Virus record (IMG/VR): IMGVR_UViG_3300023174_000033 | Location: 400,606-464,605 of that record | Length of the DNA stretch: 64,000 nt | Reading direction: 5' to 3' (one strand) | Shown here: in pieces, positions 17,065-64,000 of the stretch | How positions within the stretch are numbered: the stretch's first letter is position 1 | Layout: each line of letters opens with the position of its first letter | The notes under the pieces: generated by a model | The model's database searches: none | What the model was told of the DNA's origin: nothing | Seen by the model: only the letters and a program-made list of their open reading frames with translations | Translations under genes and position numbers: made by a program

Positions 17065-17116
17065 ATTATCATTTATATTATTAAACTATAAAATGTTAAG
17101 TGAGTATAACATTATT

Positions 17117-18157
17117 ATGAATATTGAACTACAATACTTAGAACTCCTTAAAGATATATTAGAAAATGGTTGTTCAAAAGGTGATAGAACTGGAACAGGA
17201 ACTATCTCAGTCTTTGGAAGACAAATCAGGCACAAAATGTCAGAAGGATTTCCACTTCTCACAACTAAAAAAATGTATTTCAAAGGGGTTATTACTGAAC
17301 TTCTGTGGTTTTTGCGCGGAGATACAAATATTAAATATCTTTTGGACAATGATTGTCATATCTGGGATGGTGATGCTTGGGCTAACTATTCCAAAAAAGT
17401 GATTGCAAACAATTTACAACTTATTCCTGCAACGGATTTACCCAAAACAAAAGAACAATTCATTGAAAAAATCAAAACTGATCAGGATTTCGCTAATACG
17501 TGGGGTGAATTGGGTAAAGTTTATGGACATGGTTGGCGTAATTGGAATGATAGTATTGACCAAATAGCAAACCTAATCAAAGATCTTAAGACAAATCCAG
17601 ACTCTCGTAGACTTATGGTATCCGCCTGGAATCCCTCAGATTTACCAAATCAAGTTTTACCACCTTGTCATTATGGGTTTCAAGTTTATACAAGGGAATT
17701 AAGCCTTCCTGAAAGAATGGAACTTTGGGAAAAACTTCCTAATAAAGATGTTATGGATTTTCCTATTGGCCAATTAACAGATGAACAATATCATAAAGTT
17801 TTAACAGATATTGGCGTACCTGAAAGATCTATATCTTTAATGTGGTCACAAAGATCGATTGATAGTTTGCTCGGCTTGCCGTTTAATATAGCTTCTTATG
17901 CCACACTATTAGAAATTTTAGCAAAAGAAGTTAATATGGTACCAGATGAACTTATTGGAAATCTTGGTGATTGTCACATTTATAGTAACCACATTGAACA
18001 AGTAAAAGAACAGATTTCAAGAACACCATATAAATTACCAACCCTAAAATTTGAAGTTACAAATCTACTTGAAAATTTAATGGATTGGAAACCATCAGAT
18101 TTTTCAATCTTAAATTATGAATCTCACCCAGCTATAAAAGCTCCTCTGAGTAACTAA
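17117..18157 (+). CDS. thyA: Thymidylate synthase
   Basis: DRTGTGT, FPLLTTKK, ELLWFLRG, DSRR, LPPCH, QRSID..LGLPFNIASY, HIYSNH. Likely start is MNIELQY. Confidence 0.95.
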   Translation: MNIELQYLELLKDILENGCSKGDRTGTGTISVFGRQIRHKMSEGFPLLTTKKMYFKGVITELLWFLRGDTNIKYLLDNDCHIWDGDAWANYSKKVIANNLQLIPATDLPKTKEQFIEKIKTDQDFANTWGELGKVYGHGWRNWNDSIDQIANLIKDLKTNPDSRRLMVSAWNPSDLPNQVLPPCHYGFQVYTRELSLPERMELWEKLPNKDVMDFPIGQLTDEQYHKVLTDIGVPERSISLMWSQRSIDSLLGLPFNIASYATLLEILAKEVNMVPDELIGNLGDCHIYSNHIEQVKEQISRTPYKLPTLKFEVTNLLENLMDWKPSDFSILNYESHPAIKAPLSN

Positions 18158-26718: not shown

Positions 26719-26792
26719 GGGCTCTTAACTCAGTAGGTCAGAGTGTCGGTCTCATAAACCGGAAGTCGTTGGTTCAAACCCAACAGGGCCCA
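26719..26792 (+). tRNA. tRNA with CAU anticodon (Met or lysidine-type Ile2)
   Basis: Acceptor GGGCTCT/AGGGCCC, loop CT-CAT-AA, T arm GTTGG-TTCAAAC-CCAAC. No encoded CCA. Confidence 0.9.
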
Positions 26793-26825
26793 CACTTTTT
26801 TATTAAAAAAAACTAATTAACTAAC

Positions 26826-28037: not shown

Positions 28038-28361
28038 TTAAAGAGTTTTAATCCATTCTATAAGTAGTAATGATACTTTATATCCACAGAATGCTCCAAG
28101 TGCGGATGGAATTGGAAATACAATTAATTTACCTAAATCAGTAACATATTTAGGTCTATTAACAATTTTCCCCATAAAAAAGTAATAAGCTAAATAACCA
28201 AGTAAAACAGCAATATCTGTTTTAGTAGCTATAAAAACCACAAGAGTTGCACCAATAAAACCAAAAGTAAAGTTATCTCTTACACCCTCCCATACTTCAT
28301 ATGGTGTTGCTTCATTAATTTCTTTAATTATCTTCTTATGTAGTTCTTTAGTCTTTCTCAT
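28038..28361 (-). CDS. Membrane protein
   Basis: Three hydrophobic segments. Start at the ATGA overlap with the methyltransferase stop. Confidence 0.75.
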   Translation of the reverse strand: MRKTKELHKKIIKEINEATPYEVWEGVRDNFTFGFIGATLVVFIATKTDIAVLLGYLAYYFFMGKIVNRPKYVTDLGKLIVFPIPSALGAFCGYKVSLLLIEWIKTL

Positions 28362-37877: not shown

Positions 37878-37882
37878 GGAAT

Positions 37883-37912
37883 AAAAAAACCCTCTTTTTA
37901 AGAGGGTTTTTC
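37883..37912. terminator. Bidirectional intrinsic terminator
   Basis: AAAAAACCCTCTT-TT-TAAGAGGGTTTTT. Confidence 0.8.
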
Positions 37913-37928
37913 ATTTGAGTAATGTCTA

Positions 37929-38903
37929 TTAAGGAGCGGCAAAAGTAGTTCTTCCACCACCAGTAGCAAACGTAGCTAACATTCTTGATTTCTGACCAGC
38001 AGAGAACATATACATACAAGCATCATCAGTATAATCCATATAGTTCATAGTCATTTCAATAGGTGTTCCAGTACAAGTGGATCTATGACCAGCAGCTGGA
38101 CAACCATAGTTTGCAGTATTATGAGTTGGAGTATCTGTAACTAGATCAGAACCACAAGTTGCATCTCCCCAAATGTGACGAAGGTTTAACCAGTGTCCAA
38201 CTTCATGTGTAGCGGTTCTGCCTTTGTTGAATGGAGCTGCGGCAGTTCCAGTTCTTCCAAATGCAGTGTTTAAGATAACAACACCATCAGTCGCAGAAGA
38301 ACCACCTGGGAATTGAGCATATCCTAAGATACCATTTCCAAGAGTACAAGCCCATAAATTAAGATAGATAGTTGGTGAAGTTGGGTTTAATCCACCAGAA
38401 GCAGTTTTCTTAACAGCATCATTTGTAGACCAAGAAGTCTTTGTTGTGGCCTTACGAGTTACACCTTGTAAAACAAAACGGATATTAGTGGCACCAGCTT
38501 TAACACCTGTAAAAGTAGAAGGGACTAAAGATACATCAGTATTTGTGCCACCAAAATCTTCATTTAAAACATCAATTTGTGATTGGATTTGAGTTTGTGA
38601 AATGTTTTCAGCAGTTGTTCTATACAATACATTAACCCAAACAGGAATTTCATAAACACCGTTTACTAACCTACCCATTCTCATAAGGTTTTGATTGGTC
38701 TCAAGGTTTCTTTCAATTTCATCCATTCTTGATTGAAGCTGAGGGTCTTCTTGGAGTTTCTGTTGTAAAACTTCCATAGAAGCACATTGTCTACCAGCAA
38801 ATTGTGGTTCAGATGTCTTGATAGAAGAAATATCCTCTGACTTTTGACAAGCGGTAAATCCTAGTATGGCTAGAACAAAACCGAATAATTTTAGTTTTTT
38901 CAT
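37929..38903 (-). CDS. M43 (pappalysin-like) zinc metalloprotease lipoprotein
   Basis: Lipobox GFTA|C, RQCAS switch-like Cys, HEVGHWLNLRH zinc motif, NYMDY Met-turn. Confidence 0.9.
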   Translation of the reverse strand: MKKLKLFGFVLAILGFTACQKSEDISSIKTSEPQFAGRQCASMEVLQQKLQEDPQLQSRMDEIERNLETNQNLMRMGRLVNGVYEIPVWVNVLYRTTAENISQTQIQSQIDVLNEDFGGTNTDVSLVPSTFTGVKAGATNIRFVLQGVTRKATTKTSWSTNDAVKKTASGGLNPTSPTIYLNLWACTLGNGILGYAQFPGGSSATDGVVILNTAFGRTGTAAAPFNKGRTATHEVGHWLNLRHIWGDATCGSDLVTDTPTHNTANYGCPAAGHRSTCTGTPIEMTMNYMDYTDDACMYMFSAGQKSRMLATFATGGGRTTFAAP

Positions 38904-38950
38904 TTAAGATTATTTTATTTTTTAGTTATATATAAAAACAATATTTGGGT

Positions 38951-39184
38951 TTATTCCAAAATCTTGTGGATTTTATATTGTCGGATTTCTTCTAAATTTC
39001 TTTCCATGAAAGTTTCATAAACTATTTTTTTCGCTTCTGAATTATCTGGTAACACATTTGCACAGCAAGTAAAGTCAGGACAACACTCATCATCTATTTG
39101 ATTATGTTTTGATACTCCACCCATCCAATCAAGAAGTTGCTCGTAACTTCTTATACTGTATCCTGTTTTTTTATTTCTATACAT
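38951..39184 (-). CDS. Small Cys-cluster protein with C-terminal tag
   Basis: ECCPDFTCC. Ends IRQYKIHKILE. Confidence 0.75.
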   Translation of the reverse strand: MYRNKKTGYSIRSYEQLLDWMGGVSKHNQIDDECCPDFTCCANVLPDNSEAKKIVYETFMERNLEEIRQYKIHKILE

Positions 39185-39437
39185 TGTCTATTATACCCTC
39201 AATAATTTTATTTCTCTTATTTTGAAACTCTATTTGTTTATATTCTTCTTCAAAAAATATTCTATTAGCTAACTCAACAATTTGGTCATGAGCTTGGTCT
39301 GGACTTATCATACCACCCCATCTTTTTCTTTTTATCTGTTCACTATCAATTGATGTTAATATAGATATAGCTGCTAGTAGTAACTTACCCTCGTCTATAT
39401 TAGTGTCAATTTGTCTAAATTCTTCTACCTTTATCAT
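39177..39437 (-). CDS. Hypothetical protein with C-terminal tag
   Basis: Ends KRNKIIEGII. Confidence 0.75.
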   Translation of the reverse strand: MIKVEEFRQIDTNIDEGKLLLAAISILTSIDSEQIKRKRWGGMISPDQAHDQIVELANRIFFEEEYKQIEFQNKRNKIIEGIIDNV

Positions 39438-39441
39438 ACAT

Positions 39442-39476
39442 AAAAAAACCCCACACTTTGGGTGTGGGGTTTTTAT
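39442..39476. terminator. Intrinsic terminator
   Basis: AAAAAACCCCACAC-TTTGG-GTGTGGGGTTTTT. Confidence 0.85.
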
Positions 39477-39490
39477 TAAAAAAATCTCAA

Positions 39491-41083
39491 TTAGTTTTTA
39501 ATAAACTTAACTGTTTCTTTAGTACTGTTTGATGTGAGGGTAAGGAAATAAACACCATTAGCAAGATTGTTAATAGAAACTTCTTGTGTAGGAGTGTCAT
39601 AAAGTTCCCCATCCATAGAACCTTCGGTCATTAATTTACCTTGGGAATTTCTAATAGAATAGTTATATACACCCTCCTCAGCGATAGTAGCAATAAATTC
39701 AATTTTATCACTTACAATGTTTCCATTTACAATTTCAAGTGGGAACATTTCCTCAGGTACACCACCGTCCATGAAAGTTGATTCACCTTCAACGATTGCT
39801 CTACGAACATTAACAGATCCCTCACAAGAAAATCCGATAGGAGTTGAACCTGGAGGAGGTGGAGGAAGTTGAGAAATAATGATGTTGTCCATATCATATC
39901 CATCTGCACCACTACCGAAATCAGCAGGGTTTGAAGCATCTTGGAATTTTATGAAATTAACGATTGAGAACTCAGGTCCGAAAGAAGATAGGTCAATAGC
40001 AGCTGATGTTCCAGCGATGCCAAGAGCATCTTTACAGATAAGTACAGTACTAGACCAATTTACACCATCAGCAGACACACTTACGTTTGCTTTCTCAGGG
40101 TAACTTGGACAAGGTTGGTTGTTCCAAGTTGTTTCAAAAGAAAAGAATTCAGCACCAGGACCATTAAAAACGGTATAAGGAAGTTGTAGACAAGCCCAAC
40201 CACCGAATCCAAGTGACCAGAAGTTGTAAGAACCACTAGCTGGTCCAGAATCACGAAGACCTGGGTTAGATAAAGCAGCTGATGGGAATCCAATTTCATT
40301 GATATTAGCGTTAGCGAAATTCTTACGAACACCAACAATACCACGGCCAGGGAAATTACCAGCAGCTCCAACAAATTGTGAAGCAACTCCTTGTTGATAT
40401 TCACAAATTGGTGAGGTTGGGGTATTGCCAGCAGTAGGCATTTCATAATTCACTGTGATACCATCAACATCATAACCATCAACACCATCACCTTGAACAT
40501 TCCAAGCTGGATTTGTTCTATCAGTAATACGTACATATTGAGCTTTCATAAGAGGGAAAATATCAAAAGAACCATTGTAACAAGTATTGTAAGCACCACC
40601 TGGTCCCAAAGTAATTGTACCAGGAGTAATCCAATTAACACCATCTTCGGAAACTTCTACAAGAGCTTGTTCTGAATTTGTTGGACGACACGTAGGATTT
40701 CCCCAAGTAGTTTCGTGGATAGTGATGTCATTACCAACTCCATTAGAAATCCATTCAGATGAACGAAGTACCATTTCACCACCGAATCCAAGAGATACGA
40801 AGTTCATAGCACCAGTGATATCAGATTGTTCAGCCACTAAAGCTTTACTCGGAATAGAACGAGCACCTACGGGATAACCCAAAGTATTACCAGGATTTCC
40901 AGCACCTGGACTCAGCACCCGTGAAGATTTTGCGGTGTTTCCGGATCTGAGTGAACTAGCAACGTGACCACGGGCAGGTCCTTGCTTCACACACATAACT
41001 TCCCAAGTCATAGCTTGAGAATTCTGAAGGGTTGTGAAAATTCCACCAACCACAGCAGTTAACATTAGAAAAAGGTTTTTCAT
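39491..41083 (-). CDS. Secreted protein with two SLGFGG repeat domains and a T9SS type A C-terminal domain
   Basis: Likely start MKNLFLML (41083). Two copies of SLGFGG...ETTW...E.A.VSVS.DG.NW. Ends INNLANGVYFLTL...ETVKFIKN. Confidence 0.85.
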   Translation of the reverse strand: MKNLFLMLTAVVGGIFTTLQNSQAMTWEVMCVKQGPARGHVASSLRSGNTAKSSRVLSPGAGNPGNTLGYPVGARSIPSKALVAEQSDITGAMNFVSLGFGGEMVLRSSEWISNGVGNDITIHETTWGNPTCRPTNSEQALVEVSEDGVNWITPGTITLGPGGAYNTCYNGSFDIFPLMKAQYVRITDRTNPAWNVQGDGVDGYDVDGITVNYEMPTAGNTPTSPICEYQQGVASQFVGAAGNFPGRGIVGVRKNFANANINEIGFPSAALSNPGLRDSGPASGSYNFWSLGFGGWACLQLPYTVFNGPGAEFFSFETTWNNQPCPSYPEKANVSVSADGVNWSSTVLICKDALGIAGTSAAIDLSSFGPEFSIVNFIKFQDASNPADFGSGADGYDMDNIIISQLPPPPPGSTPIGFSCEGSVNVRRAIVEGESTFMDGGVPEEMFPLEIVNGNIVSDKIEFIATIAEEGVYNYSIRNSQGKLMTEGSMDGELYDTPTQEVSINNLANGVYFLTLTSNSTKETVKFIKN

Positions 41084-41117
41084 AAAATTTTTATAGTTTT
41101 TTCTTTTATATATCATG

Positions 41118-44828: not shown

Positions 44829-45296
44829 TTAGTTCAAGTCTGACCAATCTGGATCTTTGAAATTAATTCCTTTTAGAACTTTAGCATCAACAGTTCGTTT
44901 GATTATGTACTTACCATCGGATAGCTTTTCATAATATGTAGATAAATCTCTTTCCGTATATAAAAGTACCGATTTATGAGCTTCCTCCTCATTTTCACAA
45001 AGTTTACTCATATTTGATTCATAGACTCTTTCTACAATTTTCTCAACATCTAATCCATGAATTGCAGCAGCTTGATAAACAACAAAAAACAAATCAGCAA
45101 CAGCATCCGCAACCTCGTCTAACCTTGGATCGTATTGTCTATCACTATTCCATAGAGCGGATTTTAGTTCCCTCAATTCCTCTTCGATCAATCGGAAAGC
45201 AAGTTCACTTTCTTTTTCATTTGTGATTTTGGGAGTGGTACGGTTTGGTAGACCAAATGTCTCTCTCCAGTGTTTGATTTTTTCAAGTGCGTTCAT
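44829..45296 (-). CDS. MazG-like / PRA-PH nucleoside-triphosphate pyrophosphohydrolase
   Basis: Start MNALEKI (45296). LIEEELREL, EVADAVADL, VYESNMSK, KVLKG. Confidence 0.85.
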   Translation of the reverse strand: MNALEKIKHWRETFGLPNRTTPKITNEKESELAFRLIEEELRELKSALWNSDRQYDPRLDEVADAVADLFFVVYQAAAIHGLDVEKIVERVYESNMSKLCENEEEAHKSVLLYTERDLSTYYEKLSDGKYIIKRTVDAKVLKGINFKDPDWSDLN

Positions 45297-45384
45297 AAGA
45301 TTTGTGAAATATTTTAAGTTATATACTATTAGATTAAAAGTTTTTTGGGTGGACAAAGTTATTAAAAATTTTAATATATATGTC

Positions 45385-47325
45385 ATGCTTACAAATTTTG
45401 ACGATTACATCTATGAGGAATATCTCAAATTAGACCTACCACTTTATTATACCAAAGAATTAAAATCTACACTCGGAGCAATTGCATCTAAAGGAGATTC
45501 AGTAGCTAGTTTTCTTTATTATGGAGAATCCACAGATGCTGTGAAATCAGATATTACTTTTGTAGGTTTAGGCGAAGGTAATGATAAGGTAAGTTTTATT
45601 CAAGTCAATCGTGTCCTTAGAATGATCGATAAAGAACTAGGCGATCCAGAATCTAAAAATCAAGGAACTCTCAAGGGGCAATTAGAGGAAGATTATATTA
45701 ATAAAATATGGAGAATCAAACAAAATTTTGACCACCCAGCTTGGAAAGAACAAAGAACTGAATTGGGTGTGGGTAGATTTGCAACTAAGATTTCACAAAA
45801 AGCTGGTAAAAACTTCACACCACCACAAATAAATGCATTCGTTGATAAGTTTAAAGCTTACAGAGATTTCCAAACCACAAAGAAAGATAAGTTTGAATTA
45901 GTATCAGGTGAGGATATCAGAAAATGGTATGATGAAGATACTTACGAAGATGCAGAATATCACCTATCAAACTCTTGTATGAGGTATGCTAGATGTCAAA
46001 GGTATTTAGACATATATGTTGAAAATCCAAATCAAGTTTCAATGGTTATCCTAAAAGGAACTGATCCTAATAAAATCATTGGTAGAGCTCTTATTTGGAA
46101 ATTAGAAAATGGGAATTATTACTTAGATAGACCTTATGCTAATAATGATGAAGATATAAATTTATTCAAAGAGTGGGGTAGAAGTAAAGGTTATACTGTC
46201 TATGGGGCTAGCTATGACCACAAAGAAGTAGTATTGGATAAGGCTAATTTTTCCTACTACCCATATATGGATACTTTCAAATATCTAAATAGAGATGATA
46301 AAACACTAAGCACTGATGCAAACGAATATGATAATGGTAATCAAGATTGGATTAAATTAGAAAGTACTGGAGGTGATTTTGAAGAAGTAGAAAGAGGTGT
46401 TTATTCTGAATATTATGGTGAATATATTGATGAAGATAGTGCTGTTTTTGCGGAAGATATACAAAGTTATATACATTCAGATGATGCTTATTATTTAGAA
46501 TATAAAGACACATATGTTCACAATGATGCTGACGTGGTATATTCTGAATTTGATGGTCAATACTATTTAAGTGAAGATGCCATTAAGTCTGAATATTTAG
46601 ATACTTATATCTATTCAGATGATGCACTAAATGTATTTACCTCACCAGATGAGGAAGATTATGTGCCAGACTCATTCAGAGAGAAAGGATTAGTTAAAGA
46701 ATATTATTTAGATGGTTCACCAAAATGGTGTATATCTGCAAATGTATTTAAAAGCCCATTCTCCAATGAGTATTTCTTTAGAACTGGGACTGTCAAAGTA
46801 TTCACTGTGCAAGATGGTGGACTGATGACACAAAATGAGGCAGATACTAAAGACATAGATACCAAAGGTCTTGAATCTGACTATATGGAAATTGATGATT
46901 ATCTATCAAAAAGAATTAAACCTTTAACCAAAGATCAATTTACAGAAAAGGTCAAGAGTTTAGAATTTACTGAAAATCAAATAAATGATTTCAAAAGGGA
47001 TAGTAGTTCACAATTATATACTCTCAATTCATTTTTTAGGGATGTTACACTTGATGAAATAGAAAGAATGATGAAACTTCTAATATGGCTTTCTTATAGT
47101 GCTAGTGAAAGAGATCAGTATGGTAAACCGAAAAGTAAAAATAGAAGGAATTTGATTGAATCAATGAAAAGTAAATGCCAAGAATTTATCACAAATGAAA
47201 GGTTCTATGGGTTACAAAGTATGAGCATAGAAAGTCTATTCCGAACAATGGATGCCAACCTTAGTGATTATATAAGAAACGAAGAATTATTAGCTCAAAT
47301 TATTCTTTATAAGAATAGTATTTAA
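45385..47325 (+). CDS. Large conserved phage protein with acidic internal repeats and tag-like N-terminus
   Basis: Start reassigned to MLTNFDDYIYEE (AATATATA at 45373-45380). NSCM...GRALIW...YLDRPY domain, YSEY/SEF...DA repeats. Confidence 0.8.
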   Translation: MLTNFDDYIYEEYLKLDLPLYYTKELKSTLGAIASKGDSVASFLYYGESTDAVKSDITFVGLGEGNDKVSFIQVNRVLRMIDKELGDPESKNQGTLKGQLEEDYINKIWRIKQNFDHPAWKEQRTELGVGRFATKISQKAGKNFTPPQINAFVDKFKAYRDFQTTKKDKFELVSGEDIRKWYDEDTYEDAEYHLSNSCMRYARCQRYLDIYVENPNQVSMVILKGTDPNKIIGRALIWKLENGNYYLDRPYANNDEDINLFKEWGRSKGYTVYGASYDHKEVVLDKANFSYYPYMDTFKYLNRDDKTLSTDANEYDNGNQDWIKLESTGGDFEEVERGVYSEYYGEYIDEDSAVFAEDIQSYIHSDDAYYLEYKDTYVHNDADVVYSEFDGQYYLSEDAIKSEYLDTYIYSDDALNVFTSPDEEDYVPDSFREKGLVKEYYLDGSPKWCISANVFKSPFSNEYFFRTGTVKVFTVQDGGLMTQNEADTKDIDTKGLESDYMEIDDYLSKRIKPLTKDQFTEKVKSLEFTENQINDFKRDSSSQLYTLNSFFRDVTLDEIERMMKLLIWLSYSASERDQYGKPKSKNRRNLIESMKSKCQEFITNERFYGLQSMSIESLFRTMDANLSDYIRNEELLAQIILYKNSI

Positions 47326-47369: not shown

Positions 47370-48110
47370 ATGGACCCGTTTAGTGAGTCATTTGGTTTTG
47401 GTGAATATAAATCACAAGCAATAGATTTATTAAAAACTACCATCGAAATTTTAAATGAATTCGAAATACCAAACATGCTAATATCCGGCACTTTACTTGG
47501 ATATATCAGACACAATGATTTTATACCTTGGGATGATGACATAGACTTACTTGTTGATTCTTCAATCCTAAGAAAACTAGGTAAGATTGCTGAAAAATAT
47601 GATAACATTAATATTTTTTACAAAAATAAATATGATGCTATTAAATTCTGTTTTGATTTTGGAAAACCCATAAGTGATAAATCTTGGGAAATGTCAATAA
47701 TAGATGGTAAAATTCAAAGAAAATCAAAACTTAATTTTCCATTTGTAGATTTATTTATCTATGAATCTGGTTACGGGACTCATATTTGTGGACAAGAACA
47801 ACATATCGAAATTGATGGTGAAATTAGAAAAATGTTTATGCCCTTTTCTGGTCCTTGTGATAGGTGTTTTAGATTCATAAAATCGGATGAATTAGTTTTT
47901 TTTCACAACGATTGGAAGAAAAAGAACTTTTTCCCTCTACAAGAAGTAGATTTTTTAGGAATAAAATGTAATATACCTAAAAATCCCCACCATTTTTTAA
48001 AAAAAAATTACGATGGGGATTATATGAAAGTAATTGAGTCAAGAAACTACGACCATAAAAACAACTTAAAAGTAGAAAATATAACTAAAAAACCTTATGT
48101 TAGAAATTGA
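47370..48110 (+). CDS. licD: LicD-family (fukutin-like) phosphotransferase
   Basis: ISGTLLGYIRHNDFIPWDDDIDL, VDLF, NIPKNP..FL...Y. Confidence 0.85.
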   Translation: MDPFSESFGFGEYKSQAIDLLKTTIEILNEFEIPNMLISGTLLGYIRHNDFIPWDDDIDLLVDSSILRKLGKIAEKYDNINIFYKNKYDAIKFCFDFGKPISDKSWEMSIIDGKIQRKSKLNFPFVDLFIYESGYGTHICGQEQHIEIDGEIRKMFMPFSGPCDRCFRFIKSDELVFFHNDWKKKNFFPLQEVDFLGIKCNIPKNPHHFLKKNYDGDYMKVIESRNYDHKNNLKVENITKKPYVRN

Positions 48111-49869
48111 AGAATTAAAAACACATTTGCCGACTGGTGTAGATGCAAAGATTATGCAGTATGAGGAAAATGCTACAAACATCTCCGATGATAAAATTGA
48201 TTTTCCTAAATTATTGGATGGCACACAAACTACCATACTCATAAATATGGAAAGACATACTGAGAGATATCATGTAAGTTTGGAACAATTAAAAAAACTA
48301 TCAATACAAAATTTTGTACACCTTAAAGGAACTGATGGTAAAATTAAATCTCAGTTGGAACAGGATCTAACTTACATCTTGGGGTTTATCAAACAATTCA
48401 ATGATAAGGTAGTTAGTAATCAAATAGAAATAAATGATTTCTCAGAAGTAAATAATCAAGGTGTAAATCTACAAGATGGACCACTTGGCTGTTATTGTTC
48501 ACATCTTAGAGCAATGATTTATGGTTACTTATCTGGTAGTGATTACACTATAATTTGTGAAGATGATATTTCTATTACAAACACAAAAAATATTGAGGAG
48601 TATATACCAAAAATTCCAAATGATTGGGATGTTATTTTCTTGAACTCAAGACCCAAAAATGTTTTACATGACGAACCTTATTATAAATTCATTGATGAAT
48701 TCCATTCTGGTCACTTTTATATTATCAAAAACAAAGCTCTACCTACCATATTTAGTGGTATGTACCCGATGAACGACCAAGTAGATGTTCTACTTTCTTT
48801 CTTACACAAGAAATTGAATATGTATAACATACCAGATACTGTTTATCAAAAGAACTTAGAAACCAATACCCAAAACAATCTTGATATTATTTTTAGTTCA
48901 CCTAACTATATTCCAGTAACAGATGCTTTAAACAAATCAGAAGAAATATTAAATCACTATGCTAATAAAATTCTTCCTGATAACACAGACCAAAATAGAT
49001 TGATTGTAAAGCATTTGATGTATGATATGATTTACAATTTTATACTAACTAAAGGCATTAATAACGAACCAGATCCCAACATAGAAGACTATGTTTTTGA
49101 TAATCCCCATATTGGAAAATGGAGATATACTAAGTTGGAAAAATTTGTTGGATTTTTCTTACAATGTACGAAAAAAGGAATTAACCCAAAGTTAGCTGGT
49201 CAAGGTTTAACAAATGCACTGTTATTTACTTTAAATAAGTTCACTGAATTACATGATACTGATGGAGATATTAAAGCTTATGGATTTGGATCGACTGCTC
49301 ATACCTACAAAGTTGGTAATGATTTGTTAATCAAAAGATATAATAAAAAATTGAGGTGGGCTACTGAAGGTCATGATGACCCCAAAAAAATTATGAATAA
49401 GGAAATAGAACTTTTGGAAAAATTAAAAAATGTAAAATCGGTTCCGAAAATAGTTGACTATGACAATAGAGATATCATTATGGAATATAGGGGGGAATCT
49501 ATCTATAATGATTTTAACTTACCTACTGATTGGAAGGATCAAATAACAAATATATTTTCTGAACTTACTAATAATGGTGTATTTTATCCAGAGTTTAGGT
49601 TGCAGAATATCCTTGTATTAGATGGTAAGATTAGTTTTGTTGATTTTGGTATGGCTGAGTTTAGGGATAAATGTGATAACGCTATCAATCTCGAAAAGTT
49701 TATTAAGTATTTGAGTTTACTTGAGGATAAGTTTAAGATTGTAATTGATTTAGATGCTAGACAAAGGTTGATTTCAACTTTTCTAAAAAATGTTAATATG
49801 CCAACGCCGACCATAGACCAGAAGTTTTCGGAAGGTATTGAACCATTGTTTGGTAATGACTTTTTTTAG
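48097..49869 (+). CDS. GT25 glycosyltransferase fused to a C-terminal kinase-like domain
   Basis: LINMERHTER, GCYCSH, ICEDD. Then GFGSTAH, LIKRY, IIMEYRG, YPEFRLQN, FVDFG. Confidence 0.8.
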   Translation: MLEIEELKTHLPTGVDAKIMQYEENATNISDDKIDFPKLLDGTQTTILINMERHTERYHVSLEQLKKLSIQNFVHLKGTDGKIKSQLEQDLTYILGFIKQFNDKVVSNQIEINDFSEVNNQGVNLQDGPLGCYCSHLRAMIYGYLSGSDYTIICEDDISITNTKNIEEYIPKIPNDWDVIFLNSRPKNVLHDEPYYKFIDEFHSGHFYIIKNKALPTIFSGMYPMNDQVDVLLSFLHKKLNMYNIPDTVYQKNLETNTQNNLDIIFSSPNYIPVTDALNKSEEILNHYANKILPDNTDQNRLIVKHLMYDMIYNFILTKGINNEPDPNIEDYVFDNPHIGKWRYTKLEKFVGFFLQCTKKGINPKLAGQGLTNALLFTLNKFTELHDTDGDIKAYGFGSTAHTYKVGNDLLIKRYNKKLRWATEGHDDPKKIMNKEIELLEKLKNVKSVPKIVDYDNRDIIMEYRGESIYNDFNLPTDWKDQITNIFSELTNNGVFYPEFRLQNILVLDGKISFVDFGMAEFRDKCDNAINLEKFIKYLSLLEDKFKIVIDLDARQRLISTFLKNVNMPTPTIDQKFSEGIEPLFGNDFF

Positions 49870-49892
49870 AAAAGTTAAAAATTTTCTATGAT

Positions 49893-50435
49893 ATGAACAA
49901 TTGTTTCAAACAAATTGATGTTAAAATTAAATTCAATGGGTCATTATCAGATATAAAATCTGACTTACACATGACTCATGACAAGTGGCAAAAATATGGA
50001 CTCACTCTAAAGAAAAAAGAAAATTATGAGGCTTCAATTGCAACTACATACGAGGTAACAGATCAAGTAAAATCATATGTACTCTCAAAAATCCCAACTG
50101 AATTACTTCAATTAGAAACACCAAAAGTTTGGTATCTTGAAGTTACTGGAACAAATAAAAGTACAACAATGGTTCCACCACACATTGACACTTTTAGGAT
50201 ATGTACAATAAATTTTTATATCAATACCAATGGCGAGACAACTAAATTTTACGAATATAAATCCGGAACTATTATAGATGAAATTGGTGAGTTTTGTGCA
50301 AAAGACAATGAATGTTTTATCCTAAACACCACCGTACCACATTCGGTAAAACTTATGTCAGAAAAAAAAAGATCGGTAATTGGAGCTTCGTTCATAAAGA
50401 CCCCATATGAAAAAGTAATAACTTATTTCTCTTAA
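49893..50435 (-). CDS. 2OG-Fe(II) dioxygenase-like protein
   Basis: PPHIDT...INFY...VPHSV...R...ASF facial-triad pattern. Confidence 0.7.
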
Positions 50436-51040
50436 AAAATATCTTCCAAGGTAGTTATCTTCCTCAAGTATCTATAATGTCCACCTATCAATTCATATTT
50501 CATATCAAACCTACTAACAACAGGTAAAATTTCACACTCCTCACCTGTTTGAATATAGGTGTTAAAAATGTGTTTGAATAAATCAAAGTTAGTTATTTGT
50601 GGAGAACAAAGCTCAATGAAATCATTTCGGTTTGGTATAACGTATCCAACATCTTTCAATTGAGCTAGGCCGTTTAGCATCGGTAAATAAAATTGAGAGT
50701 GTAGATTTTTATTTGAACTTTCTAAAAGCCTTTCCACCATTGACTCTGTGATATAAGGTCTAGCAGCATCATGAATTAGAATGTTTGAACACTTGTCAAT
50801 GTTGGATAGTGCAACTTTTATAGATTCCAATCTTGAATCGTTATCTGTTAGCAAAACGTCACCATATATTTTTAAGTAACAATCTGAATTAGCAACGATA
50901 ATCACATCGTCAAGATATTTGGAAAATAGATCAATTGAATGTTGAACCATAGGTTTATCACCTATAGGATATAATTGTTTTGGAATTTCCGAATTAAATC
51001 GAGTTGATTTACCAGCGGCTAATATAACACCTATGTTCAT
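50432..51040 (-). CDS. IspD/TarI-like cytidylyltransferase
   Basis: ILAAGKSTRF...PKQL, SRLESI, LIHDAARP, KITTLED. Confidence 0.8.
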   Translation of the reverse strand: MNIGVILAAGKSTRFNSEIPKQLYPIGDKPMVQHSIDLFSKYLDDVIIVANSDCYLKIYGDVLLTDNDSRLESIKVALSNIDKCSNILIHDAARPYITESMVERLLESSNKNLHSQFYLPMLNGLAQLKDVGYVIPNRNDFIELCSPQITNFDLFKHIFNTYIQTGEECEILPVVSRFDMKYELIGGHYRYLRKITTLEDIF

Positions 51041-54810: not shown

Positions 54811-56574
54811 ATGAAATTACTCGATGGAAAAAAGGCTTCTAAAATAATACTTTCTGAATTAAAATATAAAATAAAAAAAATTACTGAAAGAAATAATGAA
54901 ATAAAAATACCAAAAATTGCGATAGTTCTGGTCGGTGATAATCCTAGCAGTATGTCTTATATGAGGTCAAAACTAAAGATATCATCGGAAAATAATTTCA
55001 ATGCTCAATTGTTTTTTTATTCTGACTTTATAAAAGAAGATGAATTGCTAAACGAAATTGATAAGTTAAACAATTCATCAGATATTGATGGGGTCATAGT
55101 TGAACTACCCCTACCAAATCAAATATCCCAAGAAAAAATAATTAACCGAATTGATCCACAAAAAGATATTGATGGCTTCAATCCGATTAACTTTGGCAAA
55201 ATGTCTCTTGGCCAAAAAGCACACAGACCCGCTACAGCTTATGGTATTCTAAAACTTCTGGAATTTTACAAAATTTATACAACGAGCAAACACATTGTTG
55301 TTATTGGAAGATCAAATATAGTTGGAAAACCTATATCTATAATGTTAGGAAATGACTTTGATATTGGTAGAGCGACAGTAACTTCATGTGATATAAACAC
55401 ACCAATTGAACTATTAAGAGAAGAATCAAGAAGAGCTGATATTATAATCGTAGCAGTTGGTAAAGTAAATCTTTTAAAAGAAGATATGGTAAAGGATGGT
55501 GCCATAGTTATTGACGTTGGCATAAATATGGTTGGTGATACAATCGTAGGAGATTGTGATTTTGAAAACGTATCTCCGAAATGTGAATGGATCACACCTG
55601 TTCCAGGTGGTGTTGGCCCAATGACAATTTGTGCACTTCTTTTGAACACATTTGCAACTTGGTATGAAAAAAATAAAATACTTGAAGAAAAGATAAATTC
55701 AATTGACTACACAGTTAAACTGATTGAGAGTCTAGACCAAAGTTTCTCACCCACCACGGATGGAAAAAAACTAATCGGAACCTACGATCATAATAGAATT
55801 CCAGGTGATAATGAAGTAATTCATGTCATAGGTGATTATCCAGTCGGAAAGCATTCACTAATAACAGAAAATCCAAGTTTCAGACATTATAAATGGGCAA
55901 TGAAGTTCAGCTATGATTCATTTGAGGGTAATACCTGTTGGGATGGAATTGATGATATTTGGATCATCAACGATACCGTTAGACAAGATAGACTTTATGA
56001 TACCCTGAAAGAATTCAAGAAAATTGGGATACCGCTCAATAAAGTAAAAATACAACCAGCCGAATTCAATAGTTCAACCGGTAATAATTACGCAAATAAA
56101 CTAATTGGATGTTTCAAATCACACCTTAAAATATTTGAACAATATCAAGATAAAGATTTTAAACATTTATTAATTTTTGAAGATGATTTTACTTTTTCCG
56201 ATCCGATTGAAGAGTCACAAAGACAAATTAGAGAATTTGTCTCAAGAGACTATGAATATGATGTGATGTTATTCTCAACAAGTTGTATCGGTCAAATAAT
56301 TCCAATTGATGATTTGATAAGTGAATCAAAACAACCTTGTACAACAACTGCTGGTTATATGGTCTCAAAGAAGGGACTTGAAAAAATTATACCACTTTGG
56401 CACGAAGGAATAAACGGTCTACTTGGATGGTGTGATTTCAATCAATTTGCTTGTGATAAATATTGGACAAAAATTCAGAAAGATGGACAAATGTTTTCTT
56501 TTAACGCAAAAATTGGATACCAAAGACCAAGCTATAGTACAACTCTTGGCAATTTGAGTTACAATTTAGATTAA
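54811..56574 (+). CDS. folD: FolD (methylene-THF dehydrogenase/cyclohydrolase) fused to a GT25 domain
   Basis: LLDGK, KDIDGF, VIGRSNIVGKP, IDVGIN, TPVPGGVGPMT in the first ~290 aa. IGCFKSH, IFEDD, TTAGYMVS, QRPSYS after. One uninterrupted frame. Confidence 0.85.
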   Translation: MKLLDGKKASKIILSELKYKIKKITERNNEIKIPKIAIVLVGDNPSSMSYMRSKLKISSENNFNAQLFFYSDFIKEDELLNEIDKLNNSSDIDGVIVELPLPNQISQEKIINRIDPQKDIDGFNPINFGKMSLGQKAHRPATAYGILKLLEFYKIYTTSKHIVVIGRSNIVGKPISIMLGNDFDIGRATVTSCDINTPIELLREESRRADIIIVAVGKVNLLKEDMVKDGAIVIDVGINMVGDTIVGDCDFENVSPKCEWITPVPGGVGPMTICALLLNTFATWYEKNKILEEKINSIDYTVKLIESLDQSFSPTTDGKKLIGTYDHNRIPGDNEVIHVIGDYPVGKHSLITENPSFRHYKWAMKFSYDSFEGNTCWDGIDDIWIINDTVRQDRLYDTLKEFKKIGIPLNKVKIQPAEFNSSTGNNYANKLIGCFKSHLKIFEQYQDKDFKHLLIFEDDFTFSDPIEESQRQIREFVSRDYEYDVMLFSTSCIGQIIPIDDLISESKQPCTTTAGYMVSKKGLEKIIPLWHEGINGLLGWCDFNQFACDKYWTKIQKDGQMFSFNAKIGYQRPSYSTTLGNLSYNLD

Positions 56575-56615: not shown

Positions 56616-57002
56616 TTGAAGGTGAAAATTAAAATATTACTTTTATTTTTAGTTCAAATACTTTGCACAATAGCAGTAGTAACTAATCCAGATATTGATG
56701 TTCACAAAGAATTTGCTCGTGTAGAATTCCTAAAAGAGTATAATAAGCCAAGTGGGTATATAGAGAAATTGGTAAACATTGTAGTTGATGAAAAGGTTTA
56801 TTCTGACTCTTATTTTTTCTTCTCACTAACTAAATTTGAAGATTTAGGAACTTTAAAAACCATTGGAGTTGGTATATTTGGCCAAATAATTCCTTATTAT
56901 TGTATCCAAGAAAATAAATCTCAAATAATTTTTGCTTTAATTGCAATTCTTTTAACTGTTAAATTTTTATTTGATTTTATATCAGATCAAGTTAAAAAGT
57001 AA
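56616..57002 (+). CDS. DUF4359-like membrane protein
   Basis: VTNPD..H, YFFFSLTK, IGVGIFGQI. Confidence 0.65.
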   Translation: MKVKIKILLLFLVQILCTIAVVTNPDIDVHKEFARVEFLKEYNKPSGYIEKLVNIVVDEKVYSDSYFFFSLTKFEDLGTLKTIGVGIFGQIIPYYCIQENKSQIIFALIAILLTVKFLFDFISDQVKK

Positions 57003-57031: not shown

Positions 57032-57682
57032 ATGATTGATTTTGATGTTAAAACACCAACTCTTCTTTGCGAATTAATGCAAAAATATGGAAGTGATAAA
57101 GGTGGTGAGAATTTAGAAAAAACTTGGCATAATTACACACCCGTTTACAATTCCCTTTTTGAGAATATCAGGTTTGATAAATTAAAAGTATTTGAGCTTG
57201 GCCTTGGAACTAATAATACTCAGGTACCATCAAATATGGGTAAAGATGGTAAACCAGGAGCTTCTTTATACGCTTGGGCAGACTTTTTTCCAAACTCCCA
57301 AATCTTCGGAGCAGATATTGATAAGGAAATTCTATTCAACACTGAAAGAATCAAAACTTATTTTTGTGACCAAACTAACCCATTTGAAATTAAAAAAATG
57401 TGGAACGATGCTGACCTCTATGGACAATTTGATATCATACTTGAGGACGGTTTACATGAATTTGCGGCTAACGTCACATTCTTTGAAAACAGTATTCACA
57501 AACTATCAAAGAATGGATATTTTATAATTGAGGACATAGCAAACAAGGAAATTCCTCTTTTCAAAATTAAAATTGAGGAGTGGAAAAGTAAATATAATAA
57601 TATCAGTTTTGATCTCCTAATTCTCCCGACTTCAGTAAATTGGATTGATAATAATTTACTTATTTGTAAAAAATTGTTCTAG
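57032..57682 (+). CDS. Class I SAM-dependent methyltransferase (sugar O-methyltransferase-like)
   Basis: YGSDKG, HNYT..Y, VFELGLG, GADID, CDQT, IILEDGLH, IIED. Confidence 0.8.
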   Translation: MIDFDVKTPTLLCELMQKYGSDKGGENLEKTWHNYTPVYNSLFENIRFDKLKVFELGLGTNNTQVPSNMGKDGKPGASLYAWADFFPNSQIFGADIDKEILFNTERIKTYFCDQTNPFEIKKMWNDADLYGQFDIILEDGLHEFAANVTFFENSIHKLSKNGYFIIEDIANKEIPLFKIKIEEWKSKYNNISFDLLILPTSVNWIDNNLLICKKLF

Positions 57683-58367: not shown

Positions 58368-59096
58368 ATGGCAAAGAAATTTGAAATATCAGATACCATT
58401 GACCTCTATTTCAAAGAAATTGAGAAGGTATCATCACCTCTTACTAAAAAAGAGGAACACGCACTTGCTGTAAAAATACAAGCAGGTGATACAAATGCTT
58501 TGAACGAATTGGTTTTACACAACCTAAAATTCGTTGTATTACTCGCAAACAAATTTATTGGAATGGGTGTTAATATTGATGATTTAATCCAAGAAGGTAA
58601 TGCTGGTTTGATTGAAGCCGCTAAAAGATTCACATCCGATAAAGACACAAGATTTATAACATATGCTCAATTTTGGATAAGAAAATATCTTAATGAATCA
58701 ATTGTGGAATATGGCAGAACAGTAAAACTACCACACAATAAAGAGTATGATATTTATAAACAAAAAGTTGCTGGAGAATGGGAGGGAAATTTACACAATG
58801 TGGAATTGGACAAAACCATGGGTGATGAAAATGAAGATACTTTAGGCGACCACATATTATCTGAAGAATTTTCAGATCCATTTCAAAACGAAGAACAAAA
58901 TAATCAACTAATTTTTTTCTTAAACAAATTAACACCCGAGGAGATAAAAATAACAAAACTATTTTATGGAATTGAACAAACTTCATCATTATCAACAAGA
59001 GAGGTTGGAAATATAGTTGGAATAGAAGAGTCAAAGGTTAATAGAATTCTAAAAATTGCAAGAAGCAAAATGAGAAAAGCAATTACAAAAAAATGA
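58368..59096 (+). CDS. RNA polymerase sigma-70-family factor (regions 1.2, 2 and 4)
   Basis: IDLYFKEI...LT.KEE..LA, ELVLHNLKFVV, DDLIQEG..GL.EAA.RF, RFITYA.FWIR, C-terminal HTH. Confidence 0.9.
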   Translation: MAKKFEISDTIDLYFKEIEKVSSPLTKKEEHALAVKIQAGDTNALNELVLHNLKFVVLLANKFIGMGVNIDDLIQEGNAGLIEAAKRFTSDKDTRFITYAQFWIRKYLNESIVEYGRTVKLPHNKEYDIYKQKVAGEWEGNLHNVELDKTMGDENEDTLGDHILSEEFSDPFQNEEQNNQLIFFLNKLTPEEIKITKLFYGIEQTSSLSTREVGNIVGIEESKVNRILKIARSKMRKAITKK

Positions 59097-61196: not shown

Positions 61197-62168
61197 ATGA
61201 TAGTAGTCACTGGCGCTTTGGGTTTTATAGCCTCTTGCCTTATTTCAAAACTAAACACTGATGGGTTCAACGAAATTGTAGCAGTTGATGATTTTTCACC
61301 ATCAACCCTTTTCAGAAAAAAAAATCTTAATGATAAACAAATTTCAAAGTATATCAATAGAGAAGAATTCCCCAAATGGTTAGAAGATAATCAAATAAAT
61401 GTTGATTTTATTTTTCATTTGGGAGCTAGAACAGACACTATGGAGAAATCCAAAGATATTTTTGATAAGTTTAATTTTAACTACTCTAAAGAACTATACA
61501 GTATCTGCACAAAATATCAAATTCCAATTCTATATGCTTCATCAGCAGCGACTTATGGTTCGGGAGAACTTGGATATGTAGATTATGAACCACTTATTTC
61601 AGAATTAAAACCACTGAATCCTTATGGTGAGTCAAAACAAAATTTTGACATTTGGATACTTGAACAAGAAAATAAACCTTATTTTTGGACCGGTCTTAAA
61701 TTCTTCAACGTTTATGGTCCTAATGAGTACCACAAAGGTAAAATGGCTTCGGTTATTTACCACTCATATAAACAAATAAAGGAAAACCAAAAACTTTGCC
61801 TATTTCAATCTCACAAAGAGGGTATTGAGAACGGACACCAAAAAAGAGATTTTATCTATGTTAAAGACGTGGTTGATGTTATGATTTGGTTTTTCAACAA
61901 GAGGATAAATTCAGGTATTTATAATCTTGGAAGCGGACAGGCAAGAACTTTTTTAGATGTAGCTAAAAGTGTTTTCAACTCTTTAGATATAGAAGAGAAT
62001 ATTGAATTCACACCAACACCTATTGAAATCCGAGATTCTTATCAATATTTCACACAAGCTAATATGGATAAAATCAGGTCTGCCGGATATGACAGACCCT
62101 TTACTAGTTTAGAGGATGGCATTGAAGATTACGTTAAGAATTATTTAAATTTAGAAAAAATTCTATAA
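61197..62168 (+). CDS. rfaD: ADP-L-glycero-D-manno-heptose 6-epimerase
   Basis: VTGALGFIAS, FHLGARTDT, YASSAATYG, YGESK, KFFNVYGPNEYHKGKMASV, RDFIYVKD. Confidence 0.9.
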   Translation: MIVVTGALGFIASCLISKLNTDGFNEIVAVDDFSPSTLFRKKNLNDKQISKYINREEFPKWLEDNQINVDFIFHLGARTDTMEKSKDIFDKFNFNYSKELYSICTKYQIPILYASSAATYGSGELGYVDYEPLISELKPLNPYGESKQNFDIWILEQENKPYFWTGLKFFNVYGPNEYHKGKMASVIYHSYKQIKENQKLCLFQSHKEGIENGHQKRDFIYVKDVVDVMIWFFNKRINSGIYNLGSGQARTFLDVAKSVFNSLDIEENIEFTPTPIEIRDSYQYFTQANMDKIRSAGYDRPFTSLEDGIEDYVKNYLNLEKIL

Positions 62169-64000
62169 TCTTACATACTCAACTGCATTTGTAGTAGCAT
62201 TTAAATAAAGATATGTACTACCAACTGGATAACCATTTAATTGTGTTATTGCTATAAGTGCTGCCGACCTATTAGAAAATTCTCGAATAGATTGATTTGA
62301 TATAGCAAAAACATTATCATTTCCGGTATACCCAGTCATACTAAAAGTTTGATATCCAGCATTTGGTCCTATAAAAACACCCCCATCTTTTGTATTATTT
62401 TTACCAGCATCTTGCCCGAGTTGTAAAACATCATCACCAGTATTATTAAAACCAGCGTTTTTTCCAAGTTGTAAAACATTGTTTCCGCTATTTTGAGACC
62501 CAGCATAGTAACCTATTTGAACCACATCATTACCACCCCCACCAGCACCAACGCCTATCTGAACTGAATTGTCGCCTGTGAAAACACCCCCACCAGCACC
62601 AGCGCCTATCTGAATAGCAGATTGCCCAACATTAAAGCCTCCAGCAGAATCACCAATTTGAACTACACCACCAGCACTATTATTCTGACCAGCACCATAA
62701 CCCAGTTGAATTGAATTTCCTCCGGTATTATTGTACCCAGCATTGTAACCTATTTGAACAACATAATTACCAGTATTACCAGTAAACCCCATGCCCGAGC
62801 CAGCACCAAATCCCAATTGAATAGAATAGCTGCCCATATTACGTTGTCCAGCACTTTCACCTATCTGAATCACCCCATTACCCATATTAAGATATCCAGC
62901 AGATTCAGCTATCTGAACTACACCATTACCACTATTAGCCAGACCAGCACCATTACCTAATTGAACTGCTTGATTACCGGCATTACTTGAACCAGCAGCA
63001 TAACCCAGTTGAACTGAATTGTCACCGGTATTATTTGAACCAGCAGCATAACCCAGTTGAACTGAATTGTCACCGGTATTATAAAAACCAGCTTGATATC
63101 CTATTTGAACAACATTATAACCAGTATTACCACTAAGCCCCATGCCCGATCCAGCACCAAATCCCAATTGAATAGAATAGCTGCCCGTATTATTTTGACC
63201 AGCAGATTCACCTATCTGAATCACTCCATTACCAGTTTGATTACCACCAGCGCCATTCCCAATACACACAACTCCAGTTCCAGTAGCGGTATTTAAATAT
63301 TCTGTGATTGAAATAAATGATTTACTAATATCCATTTGTAAAACAAATCCATTAATAGTATTTCCACCATCATAACCAGCTTGCAAACTAGCAGGACCTA
63401 TCGGACCTTGATATCCTTGATCACCTTGGAAACCCTGTGGGCCGTCAGGACCTTGATCACCCTGGAAACCTTGTGGGCCATCTGGGCCTTGATCACCTTG
63501 GAAACCTTGTGGGCCATCTGGGCCTTGGTCGCCTTGGAAACCTTGTGGGCCGTCAGGACCTTGGTCGCCTTGGAAACCTTGTGGGCCATCTGGACCTTGG
63601 TCACCCTGGAAACCTTGTGGGCCATCTGGACCTTGGTCACCCTGGAAACCTTGTGGGCCATCTGGACCTTGGTCACCCTGGAAACCTTGTGGGCCATCTG
63701 GGCCTTGGTCGCCTTGGAAACCTTGTGGGCCATCTGGACCTTGATCACCTTGGAAACCTTGTGGGCCATCTGGACCTTGATCACCTTGGAAACCTTGTGG
63801 GCCATCTGGACCTTGGTCGCCTTGGAAACCTTGTGGGCCATCTGGGCCTTGGTCGCCCTGGAAACCTTGTGGGCCGTCAGGTCCTTGGTCACCCTGGAAA
63901 CCTTGTGGGCCATCTGGGCCTTGGTCGCCTTGGAAACCTTGTGGGCCATCTGGACCTTGGTCACCCTGGAAACCTTGTGGGCCGTCAGGGCCTTGGTCAC
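62163..64000 (-). CDS. Collagen-like fibre with C-terminal YadA-head-like repeats, partial (5' end off the window edge)
   Basis: The [12 protein letters not shown] frame runs without a stop from 64000 into track ORF 62163..63386, which carries ~14-aa VQ(I/L)GxxAGxxNxG repeats. Confidence 0.9.
63420..64000 (-). repeat. 36-nt coding tandem repeat ([12 protein letters not shown] x ~16)
   Basis: Head-to-tail units with synonymous variation and no spacers. Confidence 0.9.

Follow-up and report, generated by a model that had tools for sequence, protein, structure and literature searches.

FolD joined in frame to a viral GT25 glycosyltransferase module in an uncultivated freshwater megaphage

The present study concerns a 64,000-nucleotide stretch of DNA (hereafter, the window), which forms the last 64 kb (400606-464605) of the 464,605-bp IMG/VR virus record IMGVR_UViG_3300023174_000033, and in which a single open reading frame (ORF) of 587 aa, P0001, encodes the folate enzyme FolD followed by a glycosyltransferase (GT) module of the GT25 family. 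This protein is a genuine single-chain fusion of two complete enzymes, the halves of which, on balance, probably act as separate catalysts, with FolD serving the thymidylate synthase ThyA of the phage and GT25 serving glycans. The domain combination appears, from sequence comparisons, to be undescribed and is built from two well-known families; within the searches made, the FolD-GT25 architecture turned up only in a single small group of related, uncultivated freshwater megaphages. An earlier note on this DNA, which was prepared from the letters alone, knew of no characterised FolD-GT fusion, and our searches, which were not exhaustive, agree with it, as do two papers on huge phages, in which glycosyltransferases are mentioned, but folate genes and this fusion are not. 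Positions given below are those of the window unless the whole record (G000) is named, and translation table 11 was used throughout. The fusion and its parts are as follows.

54811..56574, plus strand: whole fusion ORF (P0001), FolD and GT25-type module, 587 aa, ATG start, TAA stop
54811..55689, plus strand: FolD half, residues 1-293, with PF00763 and PF02882; best PDB match FolD 8wfc, E 3.6e-71
55102..55104, plus strand: codon GAA for Glu98, in the place of the active-site Gln (Q100 of human MTHFD1), so that VQLPLP reads VELPLP
55687..55692, plus strand: fusion junction, at which the FolD C-terminus ...EKNKI abuts the module N-terminus LEEKIN..., from alignment and bridging contigs
55690..55947, plus strand: predicted N-terminal subdomain of the module, residues 294-379, with motifs GTYD, IGDYPV and NP..R.Y.WAL
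55948..56571, plus strand: predicted GT25 catalytic core of the GT-A fold, residues 380-587, from PF01755 and fold matches
56179..56187, plus strand: DXD-type metal/nucleotide-sugar motif E457-D458-D459 (FEDD), invariant in 33 homologues and aligned with FEDD of COLGALT1

No internal stop codon interrupts the ORF, and Pfam recognised three domains in it, namely THF_DHG_CYH (PF00763) at residues 4-121 (E 5.5e-30, profile 1-115/115), THF_DHG_CYH_C (PF02882) at residues 124-284 (E 2.5e-56, profile 1-156/160), and Glyco_transf_25 (PF01755) at residues 413-527 (E 3.5e-10, 40.5 bits against a gathering cut-off of 24), with which the PHROGs assignment was in agreement. The region of ~55680-55950, for which the earlier note had advised a check of the reads, is covered, together with the junction at ~nt 55690, by contigs X2 (54864-55992) and X3 (55150-56140), which derive from two independent public runs of a different study from the one in which the record probably originated and which showed 0 differences and no indels; no insertion or deletion was found over the fusion in the contigs of any run. 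Contig X17 (55522-55784), from a metatranscriptome library, spans the junction as well, which is not proof of transcription. A word search of 5.8 billion proteins recovered three more clusters of full-length proteins in which the three Pfam domains are all present, P0002 (93% identity), P0003 (67%, 595 aa), and P0004 (65%, 592 aa), and the fusion loci share a local order of small ORFs, the fusion, an ORF of 110-128 aa, and a sigma-70-type factor. Among 28 natural variants inside the ORF, drawn from the public-run contigs, 22 were synonymous and 6 non-synonymous (6:2 in the FolD half and 16:4 in the GT half), where random change would give ~20% synonymous; purifying selection acts on both halves, which are conserved to a similar degree.

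The bridging contigs, the conserved relatives, the shared synteny, and the selection on the variants rule out that the frame resulted from the loss of a stop codon or from misassembly. The earlier claim that FolD and GT25 lie in one frame was thus confirmed, and the finding that it had named as damaging, two genes joined by a lost stop codon, was not made, with four lineages down to 65% identity keeping the one frame. An artefact, in which an error of sequencing or assembly, or the recent loss of a stop codon, had merged two genes, therefore has a negligible probability; the junction retains neither a start codon nor a linker or spacer in the alignment, and no point in favour of an artefact was found. 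A second copy of either half was not found elsewhere in the genome, a peptide-pattern scan of IMG/VR viral contigs gave no confirmed relative of the fusion, and no match to the C-terminal half was obtained by tblastn among 50,697 phage records, with LR745206 and the Lak phages matching the FolD half only. Co-folding of residues 1-293 with residues 294-587 gave a score of 0.00, which carries no weight in either direction. A contig of run X4 fits up to position 55628 and then reads as the FolD of another co-occurring phage (P0006/P0009-like); a gene break at this point was considered and ruled out because the continuation translates as ..GLILNTYEA, like P0006 and P0009, and several related megaphage FolDs coexist in these lakes.

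Regarding the FolD half, its nearest relatives were the FolD of the 634.8-kb uncultured phage LR745206 (60%), followed by those of the Lak megaphages (42-47%). The motifs YxxxK (Y50/K54), KDIDG (118-122), GRSNIVGKP (166-174), and PVPGGVGP (263-270) are kept, and this half would be of the NADP-dependent 5,10-methylene-tetrahydrofolate (THF) dehydrogenase type. The earlier description of an intact FolD held for the two Pfam domains, which are complete, but not for the conserved Gln of VQLPLP, which is Glu98. This position is occupied by Gln in 115 of the 118 FolD homologues collected and by Glu in the other 3, all of which are fusions (P0001, P0002, and P0004). The Gln is reportedly necessary for the cyclohydrolase step (Sundararajan & MacKenzie 2002) and, hence, for the formation of 10-formyl-THF, and the cyclohydrolase site of the FolD half is probably altered by the substitution. 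The Q100A variant of human MTHFD1 retains dehydrogenase activity (PMC10132981). Since the fusion P0003 retains Gln and branches first in the module tree (at a weak node, 83/47), the change is most simply regarded as one event after the fusion.

The ~90-aa linker described in the earlier note proved to be conserved, to be predicted to fold with high confidence, and to belong to a ~300-aa module, which related megaphages encode as a stand-alone protein: residues 294-379 form near-invariant alignment columns, with a predicted local distance difference test (pLDDT) score of about 80-95 from module residue 11 on, and the module model as a whole reached a pLDDT of 88.9 and a predicted template modelling score (pTM) of 0.86. 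Two motifs, IINDxxRxDR and GCFxSH, could be aligned with COLGALT1, which was also the best match in a fold search against solved structures (9evj, E 1.9e-11), followed by mimivirus R655 (9crz, 3e-9) and a beta-1,4-GalT (8xkd, 2.5e-8), while the top viral models in BFVD were GT25 or multi-GT proteins of Bodo saltans virus, ChoanoV1, Klosneuvirus, and Tupanvirus. The two-domain proteins of giant viruses also match the region of residues 294-379, from about profile position 10-25. As judged from the alignments and predicted structure, the C-terminal half is a complete viral GT25 module of ~295 aa that consists of an N-terminal subdomain of ~85 aa and a DXD-bearing GT-A core.

Some 40 stand-alone proteins of ~300 aa match the C-terminal 303 residues (52-59% identity, 95% of their length), and contigs of 430-634 kb encode many of them. 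In the alignment, the unfused FolDs of megaphages end at ...EKNKI of P0001, and the stand-alone modules begin at its LEEKIN.... A maximum-likelihood tree of the module placed the four fusions in one clade (100/99) within the clade of stand-alone megaphage proteins (100/100), as sister to P0122 (99/97). In sister megaphages, the stand-alone module does not lie beside FolD; its neighbours are DUF6011, RlaP, and NUDIX genes, none of which is a folate or sugar-modifying gene, and the unfused FolD adjoins genes of nucleotide metabolism and the like, for phosphoribosyl pyrophosphate (PRPP) synthetase, a MazG-like protein, and Dam. Considering both the nesting in the tree and the separation of the module from FolD, one fusion event with rearrangement is indicated rather than a read-through between neighbours, and the fusion arose once from a stand-alone megaphage gene.

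Because the claim of novelty rests on the absence of relatives, an exhaustive search was run with a profile of the module, which gave 11,136 matches, the best 150 of which were looked at. Dozens of proteins of 560-640 aa among these best 150 carry the whole module as their C-terminal half, and FolD was found in none of the long module proteins among them. In 42 of 52 long module proteins, the N-terminal domain belonged to one family (A4), and other proteins carried GT11 or GT2; GT11 was considered as the general partner of the module and was rejected because only 1 of 25 N-terminal domains matched it. The A4 family is predicted to fold as a GT-A (pLDDT 94.9), in a similar manner to glycogenin, the Skp1 galactosyltransferase, and A64R, a chlorovirus protein that glycosylates the capsid. 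No Pfam model matched this family, its profile gave nothing significant against PDB sequences, and it was absent from the present genome. Two of the module contexts (L026 and L027) carry a PolB of 1,242 aa, PCNA, Rpb5, a TBP-like protein, RING fingers, and ribonucleotide reductase, and contexts of this type look like giant viruses of eukaryotes, as inferred from their gene content. Proteins with a GT-A domain followed by the GT25 module lie within the set P0162-P0246, and the module is shared by megaphages and giant-virus-like contigs. In the fusion, FolD occupies the place of the first GT-A domain of these giant-virus relatives, and the length of the protein is the same (~580 aa).

The genome, of which the record is judged to be 98% complete, encodes a canonical thymidylate synthase (TS), close to which lies a paralogue of the GT25 half.

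17093..18157, plus strand: canonical thymidylate synthase ThyA, 354 aa; NF002496, 350 bits against a cut-off of 325
16366-17064, minus strand: GT25 paralogue, 232 aa, 28 bp from ThyA and divergent

The best PDB matches of ThyA were bacterial TS (E 6e-79), and the catalytic Cys and the dUMP-specific Asn motif are kept; it has an insertion of ~40 aa (residues ~205-244) relative to solved TS. No second TS homologue was found, which makes ThyA the single TS-family gene of the genome, and no match was obtained in it for ThyX, DHFR, SHMT, MTHFR (PF02219), or the formyltransferase fold (PF00551). ThyA was, therefore, the sole phage-encoded consumer of 5,10-methylene-THF that was found, and the FolD half of the fusion is the only FolD of the genome. 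The GT25 paralogue beside ThyA represents a second physical association of a GT25 gene with a folate enzyme.

GT25-family genes number four in the genome, among them this paralogue and one that forms the N-terminal part of a 590-aa protein, and further sugar genes surround the fusion.

47370..51040: variable sugar-gene island upstream of the fusion
47370-48110, plus strand: LicD-family transferase
48097-49869, plus strand: protein of 590 aa with an N-terminal GT25 domain and a ~340-aa C-terminal part to which no family was assigned
50432-51040, minus strand: IspD/TarI-like cytidylyltransferase
56616..57002, plus strand: ORF of 128 aa directly downstream of the fusion, with an ORF of 110-122 aa in that place in all fusion-bearing relatives
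57032..57682, plus strand: TylF/MycF-like S-adenosylmethionine (SAM)-dependent sugar O-methyltransferase, 216 aa; TylF 8ia9, E 1.5e-12, and MycF 3ssm, E 2e-11
58368..59096, plus strand: sigma-70-type factor, 242 aa, the downstream synteny anchor, conserved in all fusion relatives
61197..62168, plus strand: ADP-glyceromanno-heptose 6-epimerase; TIGR02197, 367.5 bits against a cut-off of 274.6

The set of LicD, GT25, and IspD-like genes resembles, in its predicted functions, those for decoration with cytidine diphosphate (CDP)-alcohols or phospho-sugars, of the teichoic-acid or lipooligosaccharide type. The sugar-methyltransferase-like gene that the earlier note had placed two ORFs downstream was borne out by the TylF and MycF matches. 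In the relatives, the place of this gene is taken by a 216-aa ORF in L012, as judged by size and place, and the gene is absent in L006 and in the contig of P0002. The relatives carry other cassettes at corresponding places: two have FkbM-type methyltransferases, and the 93% relative has an amino-sugar cassette of an epimerase, DegT, and a dehydratase ~4.5 kb upstream of the fusion. A sugar aminotransferase of the DegT type (PF01041) was found only in the contig of this relative and not in the present genome.

The genome also has at least five loci with collagen triple-helix repeats, with 77 Pfam repeat matches and open frames of up to 2,851 aa.

20793-23657, minus strand: collagen-like locus in the window
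62163-63998, minus strand: collagen-like locus in the window
G000 98650-107202: collagen-like locus
G000 194247-198125: collagen-like locus
G000 369801-378071: collagen-like locus
G000 462771-464605 plus 1-369: collagen-like locus, overlapping the one at 62163-63998 of the window

Their repeats are rich in G-P-Q, with Gln at 49-73% of the Y positions, Thr at up to 25%, and also Ser; Lys is essentially absent from the Y position and is never among its six commonest residues. Neither of the 2-oxoglutarate (2OG)-oxygenase families PF13640 and PF03171 had a match in the genome, and the hydroxylysine chemistry of COLGALT1 is excluded on these two grounds; the glycosylation of Thr or Ser in collagen-like fibres is possible. 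A collagen locus is found no more than 6 kb from three of the four GT25 genes (P ~0.025, uncorrected for gene clustering), a proximity not seen in the loci of the relatives. The heptose 6-epimerase gene overlaps the 3' end of a convergent collagen-like gene by 6 bp, and the collagen loci account for bumps in GC content at 22-24 kb and 62-64 kb. At G000 ~376482, a single in-frame TGA divides collagen frames of 2,227 and 529 aa (a frame of 2,757 aa with 1 TGA), which could be a matter of read-through, recoding, or two genes.

From these observations, we infer the activities of the two halves, the direction of flux, the acceptor, and the benefit of the fusion as follows. FolD would interconvert the one-carbon folates of the host and, thus, keep 5,10-methylene-THF available for the phage ThyA, which would supply dTMP for a 465-kb genome of 30% GC. 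The GT25 half may use a nucleotide sugar as the donor of a hexose and belong to a glycan pathway directed by the phage, other genes of which (LicD, IspD-like, more GT25s, sugar O-methyltransferase, and heptose epimerase) would lie in the strain-variable island around the fusion, with virion or collagen-like fibre proteins (at Thr/Ser) or host envelope glycans as candidate acceptors. Solved FolD structures show an obligate dimer, and dimerisation or co-expression of the transferase may, therefore, be a further role of the fusion. The earlier note had offered as one option that FolD supports ThyA and that the fusion is incidental. The former part fits better with the canonical ThyA, the lack of matches to ThyX, DHFR, and SHMT, and the position of unfused FolD among nucleotide genes, whereas the word incidental may be too strong because the fusion is conserved, both halves are under selection, FolD stands in the place of GT-A, and an independent fusion of FolD exists.

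Several points weigh against halves that work separately. This independent megaphage fusion, P0006 (757 aa, L013 878-3151), consists of an N-terminal extension, a FolD that is 61% identical to that of the present fusion, and Methyltransf_24, and its gene is followed by those for a 554-aa GT4 and a 505-aa FkbM-type methyltransferase; on a second contig with P0006, PRPP synthetase and MazG-like genes precede it. P0006 is thus a further case of FolD linked with enzymes of the glycan type, which makes coincidence alone an unsafe explanation. Fusions usually unite functionally linked proteins, and the other partners of the module are all glycosyltransferases, presumably of the same pathway. Moreover, Glu replaces Gln only within the fusion clade, in three of its four members, which hints that the chemistry of FolD changed after the fusion and that the domain is perhaps no ordinary FolD; the NCBIfam FolD equivalogs (25 listed models) all scored below their cut-offs, the best being NF010781 with 297 bits against 438. 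The substitution, which postdates the fusion according to the tree (at the weak 83/47 node), and these scores would suit a FolD recruited as a non-metabolic or regulatory first domain that replaced GT-A, which in the ~580-aa proteins of giant viruses is of about the same size and in the same place, and that scaffolds dimerisation or senses NADP(H)/folate and so gates glycosylation, its own chemistry being reduced or lost. We consider this rather unlikely because all of the other catalytic and cofactor motifs (YxxxK, DxDG, GRSNIVGKP, and PVPGGVGP) are kept, the half is under purifying selection and conserved to about the same degree as the GT half, the genome, which also encodes ThyA, has no other FolD, P0003 keeps Gln, and the human Q100A variant keeps its dehydrogenase activity (PMC10132981). 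A somewhat more doubtful proposal is that the folate/NADP(H) site (Glu98) of a FolD co-opted in the place of GT-A is functionally coupled to glycosylation, in that FolD could sense the one-carbon and nucleotide state of the host and adjust virion or envelope glycosylation accordingly, or could be a one-carbon source for an undescribed folate-derived decoration of glycans; it is kept alive by the P0006 fusion and the fusion-specific active-site change and, if true, P0006 beside GT4 and FkbM would be a second folate-glycan link in megaphages.

Metabolic channelling, in which FolD would provide 10-formyl-THF or another one-carbon unit for the formylation or methylation of a sugar handled by GT25 or its neighbours, was the other option of the earlier note and did not fare well. 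In its favour are the position of the fusion among sugar genes that include the TylF/MycF-like O-methyltransferase, the epimerase-DegT-dehydratase cassette of the 93% relative, and the independent FolD-methyltransferase fusion adjoining GT4 and FkbM genes. The genome, however, gave no match to PF00551, PF01041 (DegT), or PF02219 (MTHFR), the methyltransferases are SAM-dependent and not folate-dependent, the neighbouring one is missing in two of three relatives, and the neighbours of the stand-alone module are neither folate nor sugar-modifying genes; the residue replaced by Glu is, moreover, said to be required by the cyclohydrolase, and we find channelling improbable. DNA hypermodification in the manner of T4, with FolD feeding a pyrimidine hydroxymethylase and the GT25s glycosylating hydroxymethylated bases, would account for the GT25 paralogue that lies divergent to the only TS-family gene, and phage glycosyltransferases are known to glycosylate DNA (as cited in PMC12619734). 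This is very improbable, considering that the sole TS-family protein is a canonical ThyA with no second homologue and that the closest relatives of the module are giant-virus multi-GT proteins. Slightly less credence still is given to a COLGALT1-like hydroxylysine galactosyltransferase that acts on the many collagen-like proteins of the phage: the top fold matches, COLGALT1 and mimivirus R655, and the proximity of GT25 genes to collagen loci speak for it, but the Y positions hold Gln and Thr with essentially no Lys, no 2OG-oxygenase was found, and the proximity does not extend to the relatives. Two complete enzymes on one chain, FolD working for ThyA and GT25 for glycans, thus remain the explanation that we prefer.

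The remainder of the window, which has a GC content of ~30%, gives some indication of the setting of the fusion.

26588-26793: tRNA-Ile(TAT) and tRNA-Met, the only tRNAs within the window
28358-29107: N6/N4 DNA methylase
36978-41116: OmpA-like protein, M43 metallopeptidase, and a discoidin-domain protein with a C-terminal sorting signal of the type IX secretion system (T9SS)
44829-45386: MazG-like PRA-PH protein

The putatively envelope-directed proteins at 36978-41116, one of which would be T9SS-sorted, are a weak hint of a Bacteroidota host, and the stretch is present in public lake and freshwater metagenome runs from several studies; the phage is possibly a freshwater megaphage of Bacteroidota. 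An alternative genetic code was considered and is not needed because the fusion ORF is open under table 11 and ends with TAA, and the coding density shows no clear sign of recoding. The last collagen-like ORF (62163-64000) is still open where the record stops, and a collagen frame that matches it begins at the opposite end (G000 1-369), which suggests that the record, labelled linear, is circularly permuted or complete and was cut inside that gene.

The viral GT25 module occurs alone, behind GT-A, or behind FolD, and may, therefore, be regarded as a natural experiment in domain replacement. Virus-encoded glycosylation of virions is best known from giant viruses, and the module connects the megaphages of bacteria with what look like giant viruses of eukaryotes. 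Coupling between the halves, if it proves true, would connect folate metabolism with viral glycosylation for the first time; otherwise, the fusion would simply add to the bifunctional auxiliary genes of huge phages. The fusion-specific Gln-to-Glu change provides a simple handle on whether the FolD half has shifted in function.

In comparison with known systems, the FolD half resembles bacterial FolD, human MTHFD2, and the dehydrogenase/cyclohydrolase (DC) domain of MTHFD1 in its two full-length Pfam domains and in the presence of YxxxK, DxDG, GRSxxVG, and PVPGG, and differs from them in the C-terminal glycosyltransferase of 294 aa, the replacement of Gln by Glu, and the sub-cut-off NCBIfam scores. 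MTHFD1, the eukaryotic trifunctional C1-THF synthase, likewise has FolD as one domain of a longer chain, the partner of which is formyl-THF synthetase, a folate enzyme. In P0006, FolD is also part of a longer chain, but its partner is a methyltransferase and not a glycosyltransferase. The C-terminal half shares its 52-59% identity with the stand-alone megaphage GT25-like proteins (e.g., P0122, P0125, and P0132) over its whole length, including the N-terminal subdomain, whereas these are separate genes that do not adjoin FolD. Human COLGALT1, a solved GT25 protein of similar size, shares the core fold and FEDD; its hydroxylysine acceptor is not available in this phage, and COLGALT1 itself has a first GT-A domain, in the place of which the present protein has FolD. 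Mimivirus R655 (9crz, E 3e-9) has the GT-A fold of GT25, while it and the other giant-virus GT25 proteins lack FolD and are only ~17-29% identical to the module; R655 is a putative collagen glycosyltransferase, the function of which is itself unproven (PMC9546862). The two-domain proteins of the giant-virus type (~560-640 aa, e.g., P0169 and P0192) have the same length and carry the same module at ~290-590, and the difference lies in the N-terminal domain, which is a GT-A like glycogenin and A64R in those proteins and FolD in the fusion described here.

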